A stretch of 63,972 bases of DNA, counting the filler, from Pelomyxa schiedti (taxonomy: Eukaryota > Protista > Evosea), in assembly GCA_020536535.1 (NCBI GenBank). It is 9 parts of 9 records of this genome, joined end to end, with 100 filler letters (N's around TTAATTAATTAA, not from the genome) between each part and the next. Parts side by side here need not be neighbours in the genome. Positions count along the whole stretch, not along the records: positions 5,612 to 15,426 come from JAHLWZ010001284.1; 8 more parts are not named here. The stretch is one strand, 5' to 3'. Below are positions 1,901 to 15,163 of this stretch, piece after piece. Every line of letters starts with the position of its first letter. Position 1 is the stretch's first letter. Under the pieces are notes generated by a model. It was not told the DNA's origin and did not search any database. It saw only the letters and a list, made by a program, of their open reading frames with translations. Position numbers and translations under genes: made by a program.

Positions 1901-4573
1901 GGGACTCTGAGGATTGTGCCTGACAATTCAAAGTTCAGGGACACTGATTTGAAACAAATAGTATGCTGCTTATGATCACAGGGATGCAATAGCATAGAAA
2001 GAAGAATCTTTACCAATAACTACATATGTAGCCGGAATTGGTTGAATGGGAGAAGTAAGAATCGAATTCCTGGCAGAGACACCTGCTAGTGGAGCCAGAG
2101 AAATAAGTTGAATATGGGAGCAGAGTGAGAACAAAATTTCAACAAACCCTCAAGTGCAATCACTAGTATGCTGTGAACAAACAAAGGCTGAAATGAAAAA
2201 AAAAAAAAGATAATAAACAGAGCTCTGTGAGATATCGTCAGATAGGTCGAAACAGGAGGGGGTAAGAAGTCGACACTTACCTCGAGAATCTGTTAGGAAT
2301 ACCTATCTTTTGGCCTGGCTTTTCTGAAGGAGGGGCACAATTCTGCCCGAGATTCTTCAGGAGGGCCTGAGAGAAAGCCTGAGAGTACTCAGGGGACACA
2401 ATTTGTCTTCTTGGGGGAGAGGCAGGGAAAGCCACATGACCTTAGGAGGAGGGGGAATAATAGCCCGAGACTCTCCTGCGGGATAAATGGCATTTTGAGT
2501 AACAGCAACTTAGAGGGTCACATACAAATACATGTTCAAAGTTACTTCAGAAAGAATCCTGAGGAAGAACTTGGATTACCAAGTGACTCAGCAGTGTCAG
2601 ATGACTTCTGGAAGGATAAGAAGTACAGATTGGAGAATGGATCTACCTCAGGGATAAGATAAGATACCACCGTGTTGCACAAGACAAATGGTGGAGAAAT
2701 AAGCAAGATACCACATATTGCACTATTGTGGTATATTTCCTGAAATACTGTCAGAGTGGGAATGGAGAACGATGGCTTACAAGTCCGGCAAAGACTAGGA
2801 ATATTCAAGTCCAAATCGCCAATACTCGTGAGAAGCCGATTAAGGATTTTAAGTTTTGAAGGTCAGGTGGTTTGCTAGAACGATAGAGCTCATATCTCCA
2901 TTGACCAAGAATCGCGAAGTATTCACCACATATGCAGAAGAACTTGGCGAAATGGAATAAACACCATACTGAAAATATGGCTGAGAGAGCTGGAAAAGCA
3001 GCGCATTGCGTGTTTGGCTGTTGACTTCTGTTCCGGTATTGTTCTCCTTGCTTTTTTTATTCTATGGTCACTTATTTATTGACTTTTTTCCCCTTACTTT
3101 GTAAAAACAGTTTGTTTTTTTAATTTCGTTTTGTTCTGTAGTTTGAGGATAATGACGAGAAGAAGCAGCCACAGCGGTATGTTTCCATTTGTGTTTTAAG
3201 TCTCCCTCACTCCAACATAGGGCCTCCATGCAGTGACTCAGGCCAACTTCAATGGACCAAGCCGGAACTACATGTATTTTCTTTTCTTAGCCCGGTACTC
3301 CATGCACTCATCTCCCCTTTGGGTAAGTAATGTTGAATAGGTGGTGGGCCCGGCTGAGATGACAGCCTGTCACGAAAGTGGGGTAAGTCCCCCTCCTTTT
3401 TTTATCATCACCCCACTCAAACATAATAGGTACCCCCAGACTTATAGGCAGGCCTGGGAGAATGTGTGTAGCTCTGACCAACTCAGGGTCTCCCTGCATT
3501 GCCACTGCAGCCCTTTTCTGCATTTCCGGCACGGTATGTGGCTCCTTTTTTTCCAGTAATATATTATTCAGGTGGGACTGGCTGGCTTCGGAGCTGATGT
3601 CTATCATCAAGGTAATTCCCTCTCCCTTTTTATCATCACCCCACTCAACAATAACAAGTTAACAGATGCCAGGAGGTTCCCTTCGTCCATTCCCCTCCCC
3701 TCGCGACAGCGGGGCCTATGCCCACATTACCTGAAGTCGAAAATTGACTTCAGGTGAAAAAAAAAAAATCATTCACTTCCAGAAAGTAGTTGCGCTTTTT
3801 TTGTTTTAGCTCCACTCCAGGAGCCGGCGTTTTTTTTTTCGGACTGCGATCCAGAGGAGGATGTAAGGTGGAAAAGGAAATGCTGGCTGACAAACCAAAA
3901 CAGCTCTGTAGCACCACTGCAGTAACATCGAACCGACGCAGTTTGGATGGCAGATATAGGGTTGTAAGTTTGATTTAAACTTAAAGTTGAAGTACACACC
4001 AGTGTTCCTGGTTGGTGATGGTGTCGATCCTATTGTTCTGGTTCCACCTAAAGAAAGTGAGGTGCTTGGTAGTTCTAGTTACATGCACCTTGAGGCACCA
4101 GTGCTGTGAGTAGGGGAGTGATACAGTGCTCAGGACTAGGCGCATTGGGCTTGTTGCTTGTAAGGGATTGTGAGCATATGTGTACCCTGGCTGTCCAGAG
4201 AGAACCCTCGTAGTATACACAATCACAACATAACACAGGTACTTCCTAAGTGTGCCACATGGCTTGGTTTTTTTTTATTTTAATGGTTTTTTTGTTGTTT
4301 GAAACAAAGACCCCCGCGTCGGTTGGCACCGTTTCTAGAAACCCTGACCAGTGTGTGAGAATGGACCGTTGATTGTTCGCGGAAGGTCTTCTGATTTGGA
4401 TCTCTGGGAAACATACTCAGAGTGTGACTCAGCCTATAACTACACCAACCACCAACATAACAAAGGAGTTAAANNNNNNNNNNNNNNNNNNNNNNNNNNN
4501 NNNNNNNNNNNNNNNNNNNNNNNNNNNNNNNNNNNNNNNNNNNNNNNNNNNNNNNNNNNNNNNNNNNNNNNNN

Positions 4574-4950
4574 CGATAGAGCTCATATCTCCATTGACCA
4601 AGAATCGCGAAGTATTCACCACATATGCAGAAGAACTTGGCGAAATGGAATAAACACCATACTGAAAATATGGCTGAGAGAGCTGGAAAAGCAGGAAGTG
4701 AAAAAGTTGCTTGATACTGGTGCAGCAAGGTGGCGAAAGAGTCCAGAATCGTGATACCTGATTCTTCCAAGATGGAAGCTGTTATGCAGTTTCCAGTCCC
4801 AAAGACAGCTGCCATGGAATGGTTGTGAAAGACTACGGTATCAAAGCAAACAGACTGTAGACTATCAGGAGATTGGTGATGGAATAGAAAGGAAGGAAAC
4901 ATGCCTTTGAGAATCTGAATACCCTGCTAGTGTTGAGATTCAGTCCAAGA
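4574..4950 (+). mobile_element. Degenerate Ty3/Gypsy reverse transcriptase fragment
   Basis: LTKNREVFTTYAEELG resembles the RT N-terminal lead-in. VIPDSSKMEAVMQFPVPKT at 4751 matches the RT C-terminal PDPxKxxAVxxFPxPKT motif, followed by HAFENL. Multiple stops. The first 121 bp are also present at 2881-3001. Confidence 0.65.
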
Positions 4951-5485
4951 AGGACAAGCCACATTCAGGAGTGAACCACAAGCTAGAATATGGCTGCTGC
5001 TTTCGTTTTTCCTGTTCAGTTTTTACTGTGGAAAACGGGGTGGAATAATTAATAAGTATACCAAGTATACAGTATTGGTACCAAGCTCATGCTTACATAC
5101 TGGGGCTTGACTGCAATTGCTTTTTGTGATATGGAAAAGCATGACATTTGTGCACCATTGGGCTTGTAGTACCGGAGATATGAGGAAACCAATGAACAGT
5201 GTATATTTCTGGAGGAAGACTTAGCAAAATGAACAGAAACTCCTCCCTACATACTAATATTTGCAGTGCAGCAGGAATGACCTTACTGCTAGGGAAAGAC
5301 TGAACCAGCATTGTACTGTGGTAGAATGTGACTAGCACCGCTGTAGCAATCCTACCATGAGTAGTTTTTGGCAAAGAACACCTTGACATAATGATTACCG
5401 AACTCCATTCTAGAAGGGAGGCTTTCGGTGATGATGGTAATACTGAAGATTGATTTCGAAGGGCCGTAGATTTTCAATACAGGAC

Positions 5486-6288: not shown

Positions 6289-6497
6289 TGAGACAACAAC
6301 ATTTGAACCTCTTGAGTGAGGATTCTGGCACAAAAAAACGAGAAATCAAACACAACAAAACGGAAACGGAATTTGTCAGGTTACACCATCCAACGCCACC
6401 TCCACCTGCTCAAATAACCAATCAGTGAGTGAATCCAACCGTAGTTGCGTTGGAAACCAACTTTGCTCTGATCACCACAACTTTTTTTTCCGGGATC

Positions 6498-8932
6498 ATG
6501 ATGTACGATCCATCATCGTTCCGCCCACCAACGTTGGTCCCCAGTACCACCACCACGTTCGTCACCAATCGCTTCGACAACCTTGAGGGCGGTTACTACA
6601 CGGGCAGGCTAGTCAACAACCAAATGGACGGTCGCGGCACCTGCAGATACCACACGCCGTTGGATAACTACGACGGCCAGTGGTTCCAGGGAGTAAAGGA
6701 GGGGCGAGGGAAGTACACATGGGCTGATGGTACCACTTATGACGGGCAATGGGCCAAGGGTGAGAAGGAAGGGTGGGGGGTGCTGGCAAAACCAAATGGT
6801 GGAAGGTACGAGGGCATGTGGAAAGCTGGACACTGGAGCAGTGGAACCTACTGGTTTGAAGACGGGGTGACTGTCTATGAAGGTGAGTGGACATGGGACC
6901 AAAACGCAGAGGAAAACCTGAGGCATGGAAGGGGTGTGCTTAGGAGGAGGGTGGTAGCACTTCCAGCAGCAACTCCAGCAACAGTTACTGCAGAAACAGT
7001 TCCTGCAGCAAGAACAACAGCAACAGGAAGCAATGTAGCCATTGGAAGACTGCCTGAGAAAGCACTGCACCATAGGCGGAGTAGTAGCAGTGAGAGCCAT
7101 AGTGGAAGTGAGAGTGAGGGGGAAACACAATGTACCTGCAGTTCTTGTATGGTGACAGTTTACGAGGGAGAGTGGTATAGAGACATGGTGCACGGCACAG
7201 GAACCCTGTACTCACCAACTGGGAATGTGTACATAGGGAAGTTTGAGTGTGACAAGAGAAGTGGGAGGGGTACAATGACTTTTTCTGGAGGTGGATGGTA
7301 TTCAGGTTTGTGGAAAAACGATCTCTTTCACGGCCATGGTGAGCGCGTGTGGTCATGCGGTGACAGGTATGAGGGGCAATGGGAAGAGGGAGTGGAGCAT
7401 GGGGAAGGAACCAAGGTGCTTGCGGCTGATGGCTCGACATTAAGAGGATTCTGGGAGAGGGGTGTATCAATGAGAGGAACCCAAACCTGGCCAAATGGTG
7501 ATCAGTTTGAGGGAAAATTCACACAGCAAAGTGGTGGAAAGGACTGGGATGGGGAAGGCTCCATGACAATCCCCAAACAAGAAAGGACTGCCAAGTTTCA
7601 AGGAATCCTCCAACACAGAGTTTTCAAGGGTTGCAATGGAGTTTCACATACAATGGGGACACAGGAAATGCACTTCGGTCCTCAGATGGAGGTTAGAACT
7701 TAGGAACTCATATTTCTTCCTTGACTGGAAATTAGGAACTGAATATGATGTTTAAATTGGCAGTCCAGTTCCAGTTCCAGATACAAGCTACTGCCTCTGA
7801 GCTTGTTGTACTGGTAGATTCCCTTGCAAAAGTTAAACACTGCCTGCAAGTAACAACTGAACAAAATGCCGCTCTTGAAGAAAAGCTTCAGGCTCTCACA
7901 AAGAAGAAGAACACACTGGCAGCAGCACACGAGGAGTGTGAGGTGCAATGCAACAATGTGCTTGGGAAGTCTCTTACCATTCAGAGCAGTGAATCAGAAA
8001 TACAACAGTGCTCCAGCAACATCTTAGCACTGACCAGAAAATTCTTGAGAACAAAATGTACTGACAGTAAACTGGTTGTGCCATCAAAAGGTACCACTGA
8101 TAATCTTGTCAACTCAGTTTGACAATAAAACCACAGATACCCAGAATTTGCCCTTGTATCCACAGACCTTCACCTTCCCCAACACAGTGAAGTATGGTTC
8201 TGCTTCATATCAAGCACCAGCTCCAGCTCCACCAACCGTCTCCCTGGTGGCACTTACAAGCACCCTGCTGAAGCTCCAAGAATTCCAGCTGACAGAGTGC
8301 AACAGGTTAATTGCGCAGCACGCTGTTATCTCCAAGGAATGCACTGAGCAAAGTGATGTTTGTCACCAGCTGCAACAAGATATTGAGGGAATGAAACTAT
8401 CATGTGGGAAGCTTGATGAAACCTACAAGCACATGTTCATGCTGAAACGTGGCCTTGAAGGAGATGAATCGTTCATGTCTCACCCTGTTGTATGGGCTGA
8501 GCTCTCTGAATTACTTCCAGCATCACAACAAGCACTCATTGCTCTGGTGCTTGAACAAAAAGCTTCCAGTACCTCAACACTGACCACTACTGATGCCCTG
8601 TCGTCATCGACAGCATTGCAATCAGGTACAACCACAGCAACCACACAGTCACAGCAACCAGGGTGCACTGCACCAGTCAGCATTGGACCCCAACAAGTTA
8701 GTTCTGATGCCAACCAAACGTTGCCGTGCATTGTGTGTGATGAAAGGCCACGCAACATTCGCCTCCACCCATGTGGTCATGGTGTACTGTGCACAGAGGT
8801 AACAACTCACACAAACAAACAAAAATTATGTTCACTTACAATTTTTCTCTCCCCAACAAGTGTGCAGCTCTTGTGAGGAAATGCCCTTTCTGTCGGGATC
8901 CAATACAAGAGAAACAAAAGCTCTTCCTTTGA
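6498..8932 (+). CDS. MORN-repeat protein with coiled coil and C-terminal C3HC4 RING (putative E3 ligase), spliced
   Basis: Many YxGxWxxGxxxGxG repeats. Predicted introns 7692-7735, 8091-8136 and 8799-8860 join CIVCDERPRNIRLHPCGHGVLCTE to CAALVRKCPFCRDPIQEKQKLFL*. Confidence 0.88.
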
Positions 8933-9579
8933 AAGTCTTCTAAGGACCTGTTGTGTGATTCTGCGAACACACAGGCAAACTGTGCGCAAGGCGCACTTGC
9001 AAGACTCGAGACTGGACACTCAGAGGCTGAGTCATCACTTACCAAGTTCGGAAATCAAGTTCACAGAAAGATCATCGAGATACCCAAGACCTTTCCCTTG
9101 ACTTTGGAATCCTTTATAAACGCACACCAAGTCACCTCATTTCTATACAAAAAATACCAAGAATCCCAATACAAATATACAAAAACACAAATACAAAATC
9201 CCACACAAATAACCTACACCCAAATGTATCCATCCATTCCAAGATGAATAAAATACTTTGTGCCTCTTTGTTCTCTTTTGGTGCAGTTTCCTTTCCCACT
9301 GAAGGAAACACTGTGGATTGTTAATGCTGCACCAAACAACAATGGAAAGAGATGTTGTGTTATCAAATGCAATTGGCAAGAATCATCAGGGTTGCCGTTG
9401 AAATGGAGAGTAACAAGTGATGTTTCAGACAGAGCAATGAGCGAGACGTAGGGTGAAATGCTCCGTTTGTTGATTACACTTGTTTTTTTAAGAACGAACG
9501 ATGGCGTCACACCCAGAGTGGGTTCCAAGCTGTTCCCAAAGGGTGGTTTCAAAATGTGAAAAAACACTACCCAAGTGGA

Positions 9580-10676
9580 GAAAGTGGAGGTAAAATCACA
9601 ACGGGACTTGGGGTAAAATACAAAAAACACTGGTTTCCTCTGTGACAACAAGAAACATGTGAACAATGTGTGTTGCCCACACTGTCGTGTTGCAGTGATT
9701 TTAGAAGACGTCACACTCCTGAACAGTGGTGGAATTGTCCTGACACCCAAACAAAGCTGCCGCACCCCCGTGATCGAGGCCACACCCTCCCCGTTTTTCT
9801 CCCTCCAACAAGAAAAGCATGGCCACACACGACGTTCAGAACGAAACCCAGCCGCCCCCGATGTTTTTTTTTGATGGGTTTTCGGCGTCTTGTAAAACAA
9901 TCGGTGCCTGACAAAAAAGGACGGCGGGTGCGCGGACGCACCAAAAATTCGATTTTGTGCGTCGTTTTTCTCGGCTAGGGAGCCTTGGTGTGTCCTGGAA
10001 ACACGCTCCCCGGGCAGCCCCATCGACGGTCTGCCTGGGCTGCACACTTCCCGCCAACTTGGAGGCCCCAGTGTGGAGAACCAGGCCCACGCACTTTTCA
10101 CTTTTGGTGCGTCCACGCACCCACCAAAAATCTCTGCGCTTTTCGCACACGCTGGTGCTTTTTTTCACGCACCAGTGCGTCCCGTTTTCCTCAGAAAATT
10201 TTCATCATTTTGTTTTTGCGGCCTTGGAGTGTGGGGGCGGGTGCGGGTGGTTCGACGGTGGTTAATGGCATGGGTGGGTGTGGTTGGTCGGGGTGTTGCT
10301 GGCAACAGCTTGAGAATGAAATGCCAGTGTACATTGACTGTGGACAAAATAACAAGGAGTGTGGTGGGCACACTGTGACCCACCACTTTCAAACTGTGAC
10401 TCCCCACACACAACGGTCGTTTTGGCATTTTACCCCAAGTCCCGGGCTCGATGTGGGACCTCCCAATGTGGACACACAGTGGTCCCCATAGTGCCCCTCT
10501 GCCCCATGTACTTTCAGGCCAGGAATGGAAGCGTGGAGTGCAGGACCCCAGTGGTGTGTGTAGGAGAGAGCAAGTGAGAGAGAGCGAGAGAATGAGAGAG
10601 TGAGAGAGCGAGAGCAAGGGCAAGGGCTGTTAGTGCCGAGGTGAAGTGGGTGGAGGTGGAAGTAAAGCCTGACATT
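9580..10676. repeat. Dispersed ~245-bp repeat, interrupted here by the TIR element
   Basis: 9580-9603 plus 10445-10676 align colinearly with 34406-34649 (GAAAGTGGAGGTAAAA...CTCCCAATGTGGACACACAGTGGTCCCC...GA-rich tract...AAGTAAAGCCTGACATT). Confidence 0.85.
9604..10442 (+). mobile_element. Non-autonomous TIR DNA element (MITE-like), 839 bp, flanked by CG on both sides
   Basis: Perfect 16-bp TIR GGACTTGGGGTAAAAT...ATTTTACCCCAAGTCC, imperfect out to about 23 bp. CG at 9602-9603 and 10443-10444. Empty site near 34427. No transposase ORF. Confidence 0.88.
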
Positions 10677-10789
10677 GCACACCAATTTTTTCAAAAAGTG
10701 GGAATGGAAAGATTATGATCGGTTGACACGTCCTCCCTCTAGCAGGCAGAAGGAGCTCCTCCCAGAAATTCGCCACTGGGTGCTGCCAG

Positions 10790-11475
10790 CGTCAAGCTGT
10801 CGCCTACAACACTGACCAACCACCCCCACCCACGCCAAGGCTTCGTCGTCGAACCACAAGCTCCCGCACGCCAAGGCTGAGCAAAAACAAAATGATGAAA
10901 ATTTTCTGAGGAAAACGGGACGCACTGGTGCGTGGAAAAAAACACCAGCGTGTTCGAAAAAGCGCAGAGATTTTTGGCGGGTGCGTGGACGCACCAAAAG
11001 TGAAAAGTGCGCGGGCCTGGTTCTCCGCACTGGGGCCTCCAAGTTGGCGGGAAGTGCGCAGACCAGGCAGACCGTCGATGGGGCTGCCCGGGGAGCGTGT
11101 TTCCAGGACACACAGAGGCTCCGTAGCCGAGAAAAACGACGCACAAAATCGATTTTTTGGTGCGCCCGCGCACCCGCCGTCCTTTTTTGGCACGCACCGA
11201 TTTTTTCACAATCAAAAAAACTTCGTTTCCGGCTGGGTTTCGTTCTGAACGTGTGACCATGCTTTGGGTGTTGGAGGGAGAAAAACGGGGAGGGAGTGGC
11301 CTCGATCACGGTGGTGCGACAGCCTGGTTTGGGTGTCAGGACAAGTCCACCACAGGTGGGGTGTGACGTCGAGTAAAATCAATGCAACACGACAGTGTGG
11401 GCAACACACAGTGTTCACATGTGTTTCTGGATGTCACTCAGGAAACTGGTCTTTTTGGTATTTTACCCCAAGTCC
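10790..11475 (-). mobile_element. Second, diverged and truncated copy of the TIR element in opposite orientation
   Basis: The reverse complement aligns to about 9604-10313 with many substitutions and indels. The intact TIR ends at 11475 followed by CG. The other TIR is absent. Confidence 0.85.
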
Positions 11476-12480
11476 CGAACAACACGGGCGTGGTTCGCTG
11501 CCATTTCTGGATCAGTTGATGTGAAGCCACAGCTTGTGGGCTGGCAAACTGGAAGGTGATGAACACAACAGGGAGTGGTGAGGTCAGATGAATGGAACAC
11601 TCTCATTCCTTCACTTGTGCCAACGAGGCACAGGTGGTGTGGACCAAGGTTTCTCGGATTGAAGGATGGAAACGAGAACGTGTGCACTGTTTCCTTTGTG
11701 TTGGTGTTGAACACATAAGCCGTTGATTCATCCAAGTGTACTGTGTGGAGTGTGTTGTCAATCCAGATGGCACTTAAAGCTCTAGGTGGTGTGCTGATAA
11801 CCTTGTCAATTACCAGTGTCTTGCTCTCAAATGAGCTCAGCAAGTCTACAAACAGTACCTCAGACGAAACTGCATCACCCCTCCTCAAGATGGCTTTGTT
11901 CAAATCTGGCAACAAGTTCCCACCAAAGAACAACCACACCACCCAGAGGGCTCCCGGTCGATGTCAAGCCTGATACCGTCATTCCTCTCATCATCTGTCA
12001 CGCATCAATCAACAAGCCTCCACAGGTGCACCTGTGAGAAAAAGTAGAAAATGAGCCAGCTTGTGTTCAGGCCAACCAGTTCGAAGTCACCTGCATCAGC
12101 CACATTGGCCAGGGTCCTCACATGCAACCCATTCCTGTCTGCCAAAAACACCATCTGGCCGGCTGAATAATCGTCATCAGAGTGGTATCCTTCCATCAGG
12201 AATGTGTTCCCATCACCAAATGCTCCAATAATGATGCTGTCACAGTCTGGGTTTGGCACGTAAATGAACCACAGTCAACAACACCCAGTGTTGGTGACAC
12301 CAGCACCCATAGGTGTACTATCTCACTTTTACCCTGCGGATAAAAATTTACAGTGCACACCCTCCTTGATTCCACAGACATCACCCATTTTCTACCCCAC
12401 TCAACCAACAATGACGGTATTGATGCCATGTGACAAATAGGTGGTGCTGGTGTCACTCTGTTGATGGACAAAATTACATT
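11476..12480 (-). pseudogene. Disrupted member of the lineage-expanded intronless beta-rich family
   Basis: Three frameshifted ORFs (12196-12471, 12005-12259, 11463-11942). EWGRKWVM and VSPTLGVV resemble the ORFs at 48138 and 49820. The 3' end is cut by the TIR element. Confidence 0.55.
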
Positions 12481-14183
12481 AGACTCATTTATGCCTCACA
12501 TCTATTTTGACGATTATGTTGCGTGTTGTTTGAAAGACCTACCGTCCATCATTAGTAAAGTGAGTTATGGGAGCACATGCGATGGCCACAAACTGGTCCT
12601 TTGCCTTCAACAACGCCGAAACGCTCATTCTTTGATTGTTCTCAGAACTGCCAAAAACCAACATGAGAGGCAACTCAATCAGTGGCCGAGTTTCTGACAA
12701 AATTCCTTTTAAGGGAACTTTGGCACAAAATTATGTTTTCTTCTTCACTTGGGACCTTAATAACTCGGAAAATAGAGCAGACCCTCAGGAAAAAAATCCT
12801 GGAAGTCATTAAACACATAGGAAAGAGTCCATCCCAGAGATAACATCTGTTGGGTGGAACACTCTGCCTAAGGGTCGATTTATCAAATTATCGGAAATTC
12901 CTGAAAATTTAAAAAATGTGAAAATTTTAGTTAGTGTTGCGTGCGGTGGTGTAGCCAAGTGATGTGGTGTTGTTTTACTGTCGGTTTTTGTTGTACCCAC
13001 CGAGCATTGGGTTTTTGGTTGCCGCAAGACGGCCGTCGGTTTTTTTTTTGGTCGGGCTCGGTTTTTTTGTTCGGGATGTGGTGTTGGTTGTACACCACAT
13101 CTTTATTTAAAATTCTACATAGAATTCGGGAGCTACATAGAGGTAGGTCGGCCGCAGAAGCGGGGCGCGAGGGGGAAACATTTTTTTTTTTTTTTGGGCA
13201 ACGTTGCCGAAAGGAGTCGGACCAAAACGTGCGGGTGGTGATGAAACGCTTCGTTGAATATCACTGACTTAGAGGATTTTGTTTTTCTTGCTGTACTTTT
13301 CCTGCAGAAACTCATTTGGTGATTACCTCCCCTGAACTCGGGCCAAATGAGCTGATTTCTCCTCCTATTTGTGGGCTATGTGTTTTACAACGAATTGACC
13401 CTTTGCCGCGGGCTAAGAGGCTTGAAGGTTGGACTACTGACAATCAAAGTATTTTTTTTTCCTTTGGGCCCAAACATCGGAACCACAGGGCCTCCGTGCC
13501 CAGATGTGCGTCCATACGATGTGTCACACCGTGGGTAGGACTGTTGGCGCGAGCAGGGACGTCGAGGGTCACTTGTGGCCGAGAAAACCAATGAGGGAGG
13601 TACAGGAGTTTGTAACTTTAATACCACCCAAATAACACATAATCCACAGTCACCACAGTGTGGATTACTCTCACTCTGCACTGTACTACACTGTCTAGTG
13701 ACGATATTCCTCCTTTTCGAGGTCCGTCCCAGTTCGCTCTATCCCCTCAGTGGTCTATTTTTAGGTTTGTCAGAATTGTCTCTCATCAGTAAGCGAGTTA
13801 CGAGACGTTACAACAACACAATTTTCCGTCTTCCAATACACAGCCAACGACCAACAAGCAATTAGATAAACGAATCATCAGCTGCCACTTCTTCCTCTTC
13901 GTCGTCGCTCAACGCGATGCAGCCCGTGTAGTCGCCGTTCACGGTGCGCAAGGTGGTGGTGCTGGCCAACGACCCCAAGGACAGCCAGGCCGTCGTGGCC
14001 ATGCTGGCACCCGTCGTCGCCGGGGTCACCGCCGCCGTCTACGTCGCCGTCGCACGGGGCGCTCAACGCGAGCGCGGGGGCGCCCAGGACGCCGCTGGTG
14101 GCGAGGGCCCCGTCGTGCGGCGTCGACTTCGTGGCCACAACGCTAAATGACAAGGTGCGTGTGTTGTGTGGTTTTTTCTTTTG

Positions 14184-14277
14184 TTGCTTTTGCTTTTGCT
14201 TTTGCTTTTGTTTTTGCTTTTGCTTTTGCTTTTGCTTTTGCTTTTGCTTTTGCTTTTGCTTTTGCTTTTGTTTTTGC
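14184..14277. repeat. (TTTTGC)n microsatellite
   Basis: About 15 tandem hexamers. Confidence 0.95.
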
Positions 14278-15163
14278 AAGCGGTACTTTTTTCTTCTTTG
14301 CATTGTTATTTGGTCCAAAGGTGCAGTATACACTACATAGGATATTATTACAACGACCCTAAAAAAACACAAACAAAAACGCAACCAAATAACAAGACAG
14401 AAGAAAAAAAGGGATAGTCGAGAAATATCCCCCACAAGCACCGAGATTGCTGGTTCCAAGGTACGAAAGTGAAACAGCACCCTTGGTGACCCAAGACACG
14501 GCTCAGGTGTCTCCCATTCCGTTAATACCTTTATTTTTGTATTTTTCTTGCTTAATACTAAGAAATAATTTTGAGCTCCTCGGATCTGCAAATTACTGAC
14601 TAAATCTATTAATCTTGGTAAAACTTCCGCACTGCACACAACTACCAAAAAAAACCCCTCGTTGACATCTTACAGTTTTGGGGTTGGAGTACAATCCCGC
14701 AGGTATTACTCCGCTTTCTACTTTTCTATCTTGTAAAGCCGCATTCCATTTCACACAAACACCTCAAAAAAAAAAAGCGTGCCCAGTTCACCACAAATGT
14801 GCAAAACGAGCTGAAGAAGAAACCTCATGCTTGTGAAATTAAATTACCCTCCAACTCCAAAGAGTGTCTTGAGGCAAAAACCCAAAATAAAACATTTGTG
14901 TGTTGCATTGGTTTTGCAAGGATCTGTATCCTTGTTTTGCGTTCTTCAGGATGAAACAATCCTGCAGCCTTGGAGTCAGGGTCGGTGTCCGATCAATTGA
15001 ACAATTTGCGGAAGTAACTTTTTCTGGTGTTCTGTGAGACACTTCTTGTAGAATTTTTGGTGCTCCCAAAGACAAGTACGTAGATCGTAGTTTTTTTCTC
15101 GTTTCCAGCAAGAACGACCGACGTCCTTTGTGTTTTTTTTCACAGCCCTTTTCTGCGTGTACG

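Follow-up and report, generated by a model that had tools for sequence, protein, structure and literature searches.

A small family of non-coding inverted-repeat DNA transposons flanked by CG dinucleotides in the protist Pelomyxa schiedti

Introduction

The length and the sequence of the target-site duplication are among the main characters by which eukaryotic DNA transposons are sorted into superfamilies, and duplications of 2 bp are also known from the Mirage elements. The fixed dinucleotide targets that are known, or that we found described, consist of A and T only: the duplication is TA in the Tc1/mariner/IS630 elements (PMC10045372) and apparently also in PHISTA, and AT in ISL2EU (PMC4122938). 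PlavakaA has a 2-bp duplication combined with TGT..ACA termini. In full-text searches with partial coverage of the literature, no eukaryotic transposon was reported to duplicate CG. In the groups that make up the PHIS assemblage (PIF/Harbinger-ISL2EU-Spy), the termini are GG or GGG and the targets are AT, TWA, ANT, CWG or C|TNA|G, or else the insertion leaves no duplication (PMC4482050, PMC4122938, PMC10045372). The survey of Han et al. recorded ISL2EU and NuwaI from animals alone; NuwaII was recorded from animals, fungi and plants but from no protist (PMC4482050).

Here we describe a family of elements from Pelomyxa schiedti (GCA_020536535.1) that show the PHIS-type combination of a GG start with a short palindromic target of which 0-4 bp are duplicated, in this case a GGAC terminus and a 2-bp CG (ranges from PMC4482050, PMC10045372). 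They share with ISL2EU the 2-bp duplication and the terminal repeats, which in that group usually begin with GG (PMC4482050, PMC4122938); unlike ISL2EU, whose duplication is typically AT and whose targets are AT-rich, they are flanked by CG. Autonomous ISL2EU copies further code for a THAP transposase and a YqaJ exonuclease, and the P. schiedti assembly yields no YqaJ match (PF09588), so that membership in ISL2EU is rejected on both the sequence of the duplication (CG versus AT) and the missing gene. NuwaI and NuwaII resemble the family in their C...G-bracketed targets (CWG; C|TNA|G) and GG/GGG termini, and their targets were set via paralogous empty sites, a method common to the present analysis (PMC4482050); they differ in having 3-bp duplications (CWG or TNA) as against the bare CG, and no Nuwa transposase was linked to the family. 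Spy elements insert at the center of a short palindrome, exactly as our family would do if its insertions were blunt (C|G); their target, unlike that of our family, is AAATTT, they duplicate nothing and they are reported from invertebrates (PMC4122938). Finally, the Stowaway-type MITEs of the Tc1/mariner superfamily are likewise short non-coding elements with terminal inverted repeats (TIRs) and a fixed palindromic 2-bp duplication, differing in that this duplication is TA and in having other termini.

Results and discussion

Anatomy of the two copies in the window

The window is the whole analyzed stretch of 63,972 nucleotides, joined from parts of the genome with filler between them; the piece that holds the element is contig C1284 (JAHLWZ010001284.1) of a 52.4-Mb assembly of 5337 contigs. 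The public sequencing runs containing this piece come from one sample of one study, with the RNA library labelled single-cell, 'protist metagenome'. In the piece, the exact 16-mer GGACTTGGGGTAAAAT is found three times, at 9604-9619 on the plus strand and at 10427-10442 and 11460-11475 on the minus strand, where 200 dinucleotide-preserving shuffles give an expectation of 0 matches. The first two occurrences are the left and right TIRs, perfect over 16/16 positions and running on imperfectly to about 25 nt, of a complete non-autonomous element of 839 bp (copy 1; 9604-10442, plus strand), whose left terminus we call end A and the right one end B. It is bracketed by one CG at 9602-9603 and a second at 10443-10444, the two copies of the target dinucleotide that paralogues lacking the element have as a single CG. 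Outside these flanks lie the two halves of a multi-copy host repeat into which copy 1 has been inserted, namely 9507-9603 on the left, inclusive of the left CG, and 10445-10680 on the right, the latter with GA-rich tandem units (both on the plus strand).

The third occurrence of the 16-mer is the TIR (end A) of copy 2, which lies inverted at 10792-11475 on the minus strand, is truncated so as to be without end B and matches positions 1-710 of copy 1 at 85% identity; its CG flank, at 11476-11477, stands in DNA that bears no relation to what surrounds copy 1. Contigs from the source runs part ways with the window sequence at 10791/10792, the inner limit of copy 2. An internal pair of 24-nt inverted repeats in copy 1 (9923-9946 and 10102-10125, spanning 9923-10125) recurs in copy 2 at 10976-10999 and 11155-11178. 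These results bear out the preliminary description of this DNA, which had reported an 839-bp segment with perfect 16-bp TIRs and a CG on each side, together with a second copy whose intact end, at 11475, abuts a CG in unrelated DNA. An open reading frame (ORF) overlapping copy 1 (9214-10116, minus strand) has no Pfam match, copy 1 itself has no Rfam match, and contigs assembled from the single-cell RNA leave the interior of the element uncovered.

A dispersed family with conserved ends

Across the assembly, GGACTTGGGGTAAAAT has 53 exact matches as opposed to 0 for a control pattern, and with up to 2 mismatches it has 138 matches as opposed to 27 for the control. A DNA search with the whole element recovered 57 matches on about 45 contigs, at 75-100% identity, and we put the size of the family in this assembly at roughly 40-50 whole or partial copies. 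Both exact ends are kept in 12 copies, which measure 105, 255, 391, 476, 754 and 800-839 bp; those of 105, 255, 391 and 476 bp are internal-deletion derivatives with both ends. The retention of both ends with loss of the interior is what usually results when the repair of an excision gap is interrupted. Two subfamilies can be told apart among eight long copies, with identities of 95-97% and 91-94% within them and about 90% between them; copy 1 belongs to the former, along with members on contigs C698, C731 and C310. The 16-bp ends are exact even in copies whose identity to the query is only 75-86% (75-90% internally). Such exact ends in divergent copies, together with the existence of two subfamilies, indicate a functional constraint on the ends, and the pattern of sequence conservation points to selection on them for mobilization, as opposed to plain decay of dead copies.

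The flanks of the 12 complete copies are mutually unrelated, by which the possibility that these copies are segmental duplicates with shared extended flanks is ruled out, and no recognizable coding domain was found in any copy. The family is thus a small, dispersed group of non-coding, MITE-like TIR DNA transposons. Outside this genome, no match with homology was found in metagenome, viral and prokaryote genome collections, where the 16-mer or an 18-mer gave single chance matches devoid of homology at the ends, and a phage collection likewise contained no match to the family. A match to a described family, which the preliminary description had named as evidence against its proposal, turned up neither in these collections and Rfam nor in the part of the literature that was searched. 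None of the 57 matches within the assembly is longer than the 839-bp query, all copies that we read being full-length or shorter, and the longer copies with the same TIRs coding for a DDE transposase or a Ser/Tyr recombinase, for which the preliminary description had suggested a search, were not found in the assembly. Absences are weak evidence in an assembly that, like this one, was built from an amplified single cell and is broken into 5337 contigs.

CG dinucleotides at the ends

The two bases immediately outside the element are CG at 40 of 52 distinct ends, TG at 7, CA at 2 and other dinucleotides at 3; TG and CA are what CpG turns into by deamination. The share of CG among the dinucleotides of an 83 kb sample of the genome is 3.9%, and the probability of at least 40 CG flanks among 52 is about 5e-46. 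As a control, 120 chance occurrences of GGACTTGGGGTAAAAT in metagenome contigs displayed neither a CG bias in their flanks nor homology beyond the 16-mer. Among the complete copies, 11 of 12 are flanked by CG on both sides and the remaining one by TG and CG; a direct repeat going beyond the CG is absent from all 12, and a duplication extending past the dinucleotide is accordingly rejected. At position -3 there is a weak preference for a pyrimidine (35/52 ends) and nothing is conserved further out, making the insertion context weakly Y-CG-R. We also considered whether the elements target sequences that resemble their own ends: the insertion sites in the window and on contig C211 are both near a GGTAAAAT motif, but across the 52 flanks this is unenriched, a TIR-like motif lying beside the target in 2/52 cases versus 1.7% in controls.

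The same 83 kb sample, made up of regions L070-L079 and the window piece, has an observed/expected ratio of 0.66 for CpG and of about 1.3 for TG and CA, and TA is depleted as well (0.52). The depletion of CpG with an excess of TG and CA is a hint that cytosines are methylated and deaminated in P. schiedti.

Empty sites identify the CG as target DNA

Whether the dinucleotide belongs to the target or to the repeat can be told from empty sites alone, CG being identical to its reverse complement. Two comparisons of filled with empty sites, independent of each other, are available. Firstly, the repeat that hosts copy 1 has at least 10 paralogues that lack the insert and read ...AAAATCACAA-CG-GGCTCGAT..., with the dinucleotide being CG in 6 and TG in 4 and always single; on six contigs, the matches to the left and right flanks overlap by exactly 2 bp. 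Secondly, contig C211 has one member of the family nested within a second: the inner copy, flanked by CG to its left and right, interrupts end B of the outer one at CACAAAA-CG-GTCGTTTTGG. In seven uninterrupted copies the corresponding position has CG (4 copies of subfamily 1) or CA (3 copies of subfamily 2), never doubled. The filled site thus has two CGs and the empty site one, and therefore one CG belongs to the target; an element with an 18-bp repeat that includes the CG and makes no duplication is excluded, given that the empty sites retain one CG. The preliminary description had proposed a CG-targeting non-autonomous TIR family and had set this against variable or longer duplications on the one hand, and a CG belonging to the TIR on the other; the census of ends, the flanks and the empty sites, which hold a single CG (in some, TG or CA), all support its proposal.

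Contigs from the source runs also join 9602 directly to 10444, skipping 841 bp, at a high depth. This joint probably stems from the host-repeat paralogues and is no proof of an allelic empty site; being probably paralogue-derived, it lends no independent support.

The repeat that hosts copy 1 is an element present in many copies in its own right, and its internal GA-rich tandem units vary. Elsewhere in the assembly it extends both ways, with CACTGTGATTCC before and TCTGTTCATCAGCCC after it, and the copy in the window is therefore a fragment. Within this DNA, single-cell RNA contigs give marked coverage to its region at 10567-10717 alone.

Search for the mobilizing enzyme

For an autonomous copy we turned to ten regions of up to 10 kb each on the inner side of solo ends. 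Neither the ten long ORFs of these regions nor the 97 ORFs of at least 130 aa lying within 6 kb inside the ten ends have a Pfam domain of a transposase or recombinase; the domains present are of host type only (ankyrin, RING, DnaJ, COR and glycine-rich), and the ten regions have no internal sequence in common. Searches with degenerate ends (the 16-mer with at most 2 mismatches; YGGGACTTGGGG) yielded extra matches that are mostly old, TG-flanked ends or chance occurrences. As to the transposases of this genome, fragments of DDE_3 (Tc1/IS630-type) are the most numerous, with matches in 22 places, and those of DDE_Tnp_4 (Harbinger-type) are found in 10 places. The five DDE_Tnp_4 loci that we read, of these 10, have no GGACTTGGGG-like terminus, and none of the contigs with DDE_Tnp_4 carries an end-like match. 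A DDE_3 match and an end-like match are together on four contigs, where they are either at least 7.5 kb apart or the gene is outside the element. In all, the assembly has no transposase match within reach of a GGACTTGGGG end, and an autonomous partner with the same termini was found neither among the solo ends nor in the degenerate-end searches nor among the transposase matches of this incomplete assembly. Mariner transposases (PF01359) are likewise without a match in it.

Two look-alikes met in these searches were rejected. A pair of inverted ends 4 kb apart on contig C945 is no element: it belongs to a perfect palindrome, an inverted duplication of 2003 nt with a spacer of 341 nt (C945:17700-22050, L080), which is probably a chimera of whole-genome amplification, and the case cautions against taking every inverted pair in this assembly as genuine, since some can be artefacts. 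The terminus GGACTTGTAAAAC does not define a family, because it is found in only 6 places, 4 of them within that one palindrome.

Mode of transposition and affinities

We propose that these elements, ranging from 105 to 839 bp, are probably a non-autonomous, MITE-like cut-and-paste family that is mobilized in trans and integrates at CG with duplication of the dinucleotide. Going by their organization, the most likely agent is a DDE transposase acting in trans with a 2-bp stagger: such an enzyme would bind the 16-bp ends and excise the element, integration at CG would proceed through cuts staggered by 2 bp, and repair of the resulting gaps would duplicate the CG, with the deletion derivatives that retain both ends arising by gap repair after excision. 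As an autonomous copy and a linked transposase were not found, the DDE mechanism and the stagger are deduced from the anatomy of the elements. Indeed, a 2-bp duplication, a blunt insertion between C and G (C|G) and recombination at a CG core are identical in their sequence outcome.

The likeliest source of the mobilizing enzyme would be the PHIS assemblage, to which we assign somewhat less than an even chance. It is favored by the GG/GGG starts of its members, their diversification into short palindromic targets and the presence of such transposases in this genome; the case is circumstantial and describes a resemblance, not membership. If so, CG would be a further case in the run of short palindromic targets of the PHIS groups. 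It is possible, though we consider it doubtful, that the mover is instead an undescribed clade of transposases, conceivably a new superfamily, with a strictly CpG target. Were this true, the family would be the first case of cut-and-paste transposition in which CG is the canonical duplication or, on the blunt reading, is split at C|G; in this CpG-depleted genome, its enzyme could read or avoid cytosine methylation in choosing its targets.

Of the other modes of insertion, the one that survives best is a blunt integration between C and G that duplicates nothing, with the element then reading GGGACTT...AAGTCCC (17-bp repeats) and being moved by a Spy-like DDE transposase. Since CG is palindromic, the G adjoining the left end and the C adjoining the right one extend the inverted repeat, and both the filled and the empty sites fit; moreover, there is a precedent in the Spy elements of the PHIS assemblage, which leave no duplication when they insert between AAA and TTT (PMC4122938). 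We nevertheless regard it as unlikely: integration with zero stagger is rare among eukaryotic DDE transposons, and the data give it no preference over a 2-bp stagger. Nor do the TG (7) and CA (2) flanks discriminate between the two, as they are accounted for by ordinary CpG decay.

The typical ends of the Tc1/IS630-like (ITm) elements start with CAGT or ACGG, whereas the termini of our family begin with GG. This is one of several observations that make it quite unlikely that the family is a Stowaway-type MITE duplicating CG in place of TA, under an ITm transposase with altered target choice. Such an origin would draw on the 2-bp duplications made by ITm elements (PMC10045372) and on the prevalence of DDE_3 among the transposase fragments of this genome; yet no DDE_3 match is inside or beside an end of the family, and the defining TA target is at 0/52 ends, on which count membership in Tc1/mariner is rejected.

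Serine recombinases leave their core dinucleotide at both junctions upon integration, in keeping with the attP/attB geometry, and Tn4451 and Tn5397 integrate at GA dinucleotides. A serine recombinase with a 2-bp CG core, acting through a circular intermediate with abutted ends and one CG and dispensing with DNA synthesis, would leave the signature seen here, i.e., inverted-repeat ends and a fixed dinucleotide that marks each junction and is single in the empty site, as in the Tn4451/Tn5397 and IS607 group, but it is very improbable: that group is bacterial or viral and has a GA core; PF00239 (Resolvase) has no match in the incomplete assembly as against matches in 12 of 14 control genomes; no abutted end-CG-end junction is present among the 53 exact ends; the target flanks, unlike att sites, have only the CG in common and are unenriched in the TIR-like motif; the internal-deletion derivatives suggest double-strand-break repair over conservative recombination; and the IS607 group, eukaryotic IS607-like elements included, is described by Bao and Jurka as being without TIRs and target-site duplications (PMC3627910), whereas our family has TIRs.

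A strict CG target, as proposed for the cut-and-paste family, widens the known range of target recognition and makes one ask if integration is influenced by CpG methylation. A CpG-specific transposase would provide a useful comparison for the way in which transposases read 2 bp of target, as well as an insertion tool with a GC-type target. Programs that find elements by their TIRs and duplications, and that expect TA or longer duplications, would probably miss or misclassify the family.

Neighboring features

Upstream of copy 1, the window has a separate repeat of 363 bp at 8952-9314, with the ends TGTGTGATT...GGAAACAC. Its copy number is very high (summed contig depth of 3500-5000 versus about 30-70 for neighboring unique DNA), and three copies have an apparent 3-bp duplication (TGT, TGC and TAT). 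A homologue on contig C251 is about 1 kb from a DDE_Tnp_4 fragment, on account of which the 363-bp repeat may be a Harbinger-derived MITE.

On contig C276 (L070:7540-9609), an open frame of 690 aa with a recurring hydrophobic motif (for example AKWV, AEWF, ANWL, AEWL) adjoins an ankyrin-repeat ORF and has no Pfam match; it is probably a lineage-specific repeat protein and not a transposase. Of two further ORFs in the window, near copy 1, the one at 6429-7703 codes for a protein with MORN repeats (Pfam E 4e-33) and the one at 8076-8876 for a protein that has a RING finger at its C terminus, with CAG/CAA-rich stretches between and within them. A hexanucleotide array, about 20 units of TTTTGC, occupies 14160-14307.
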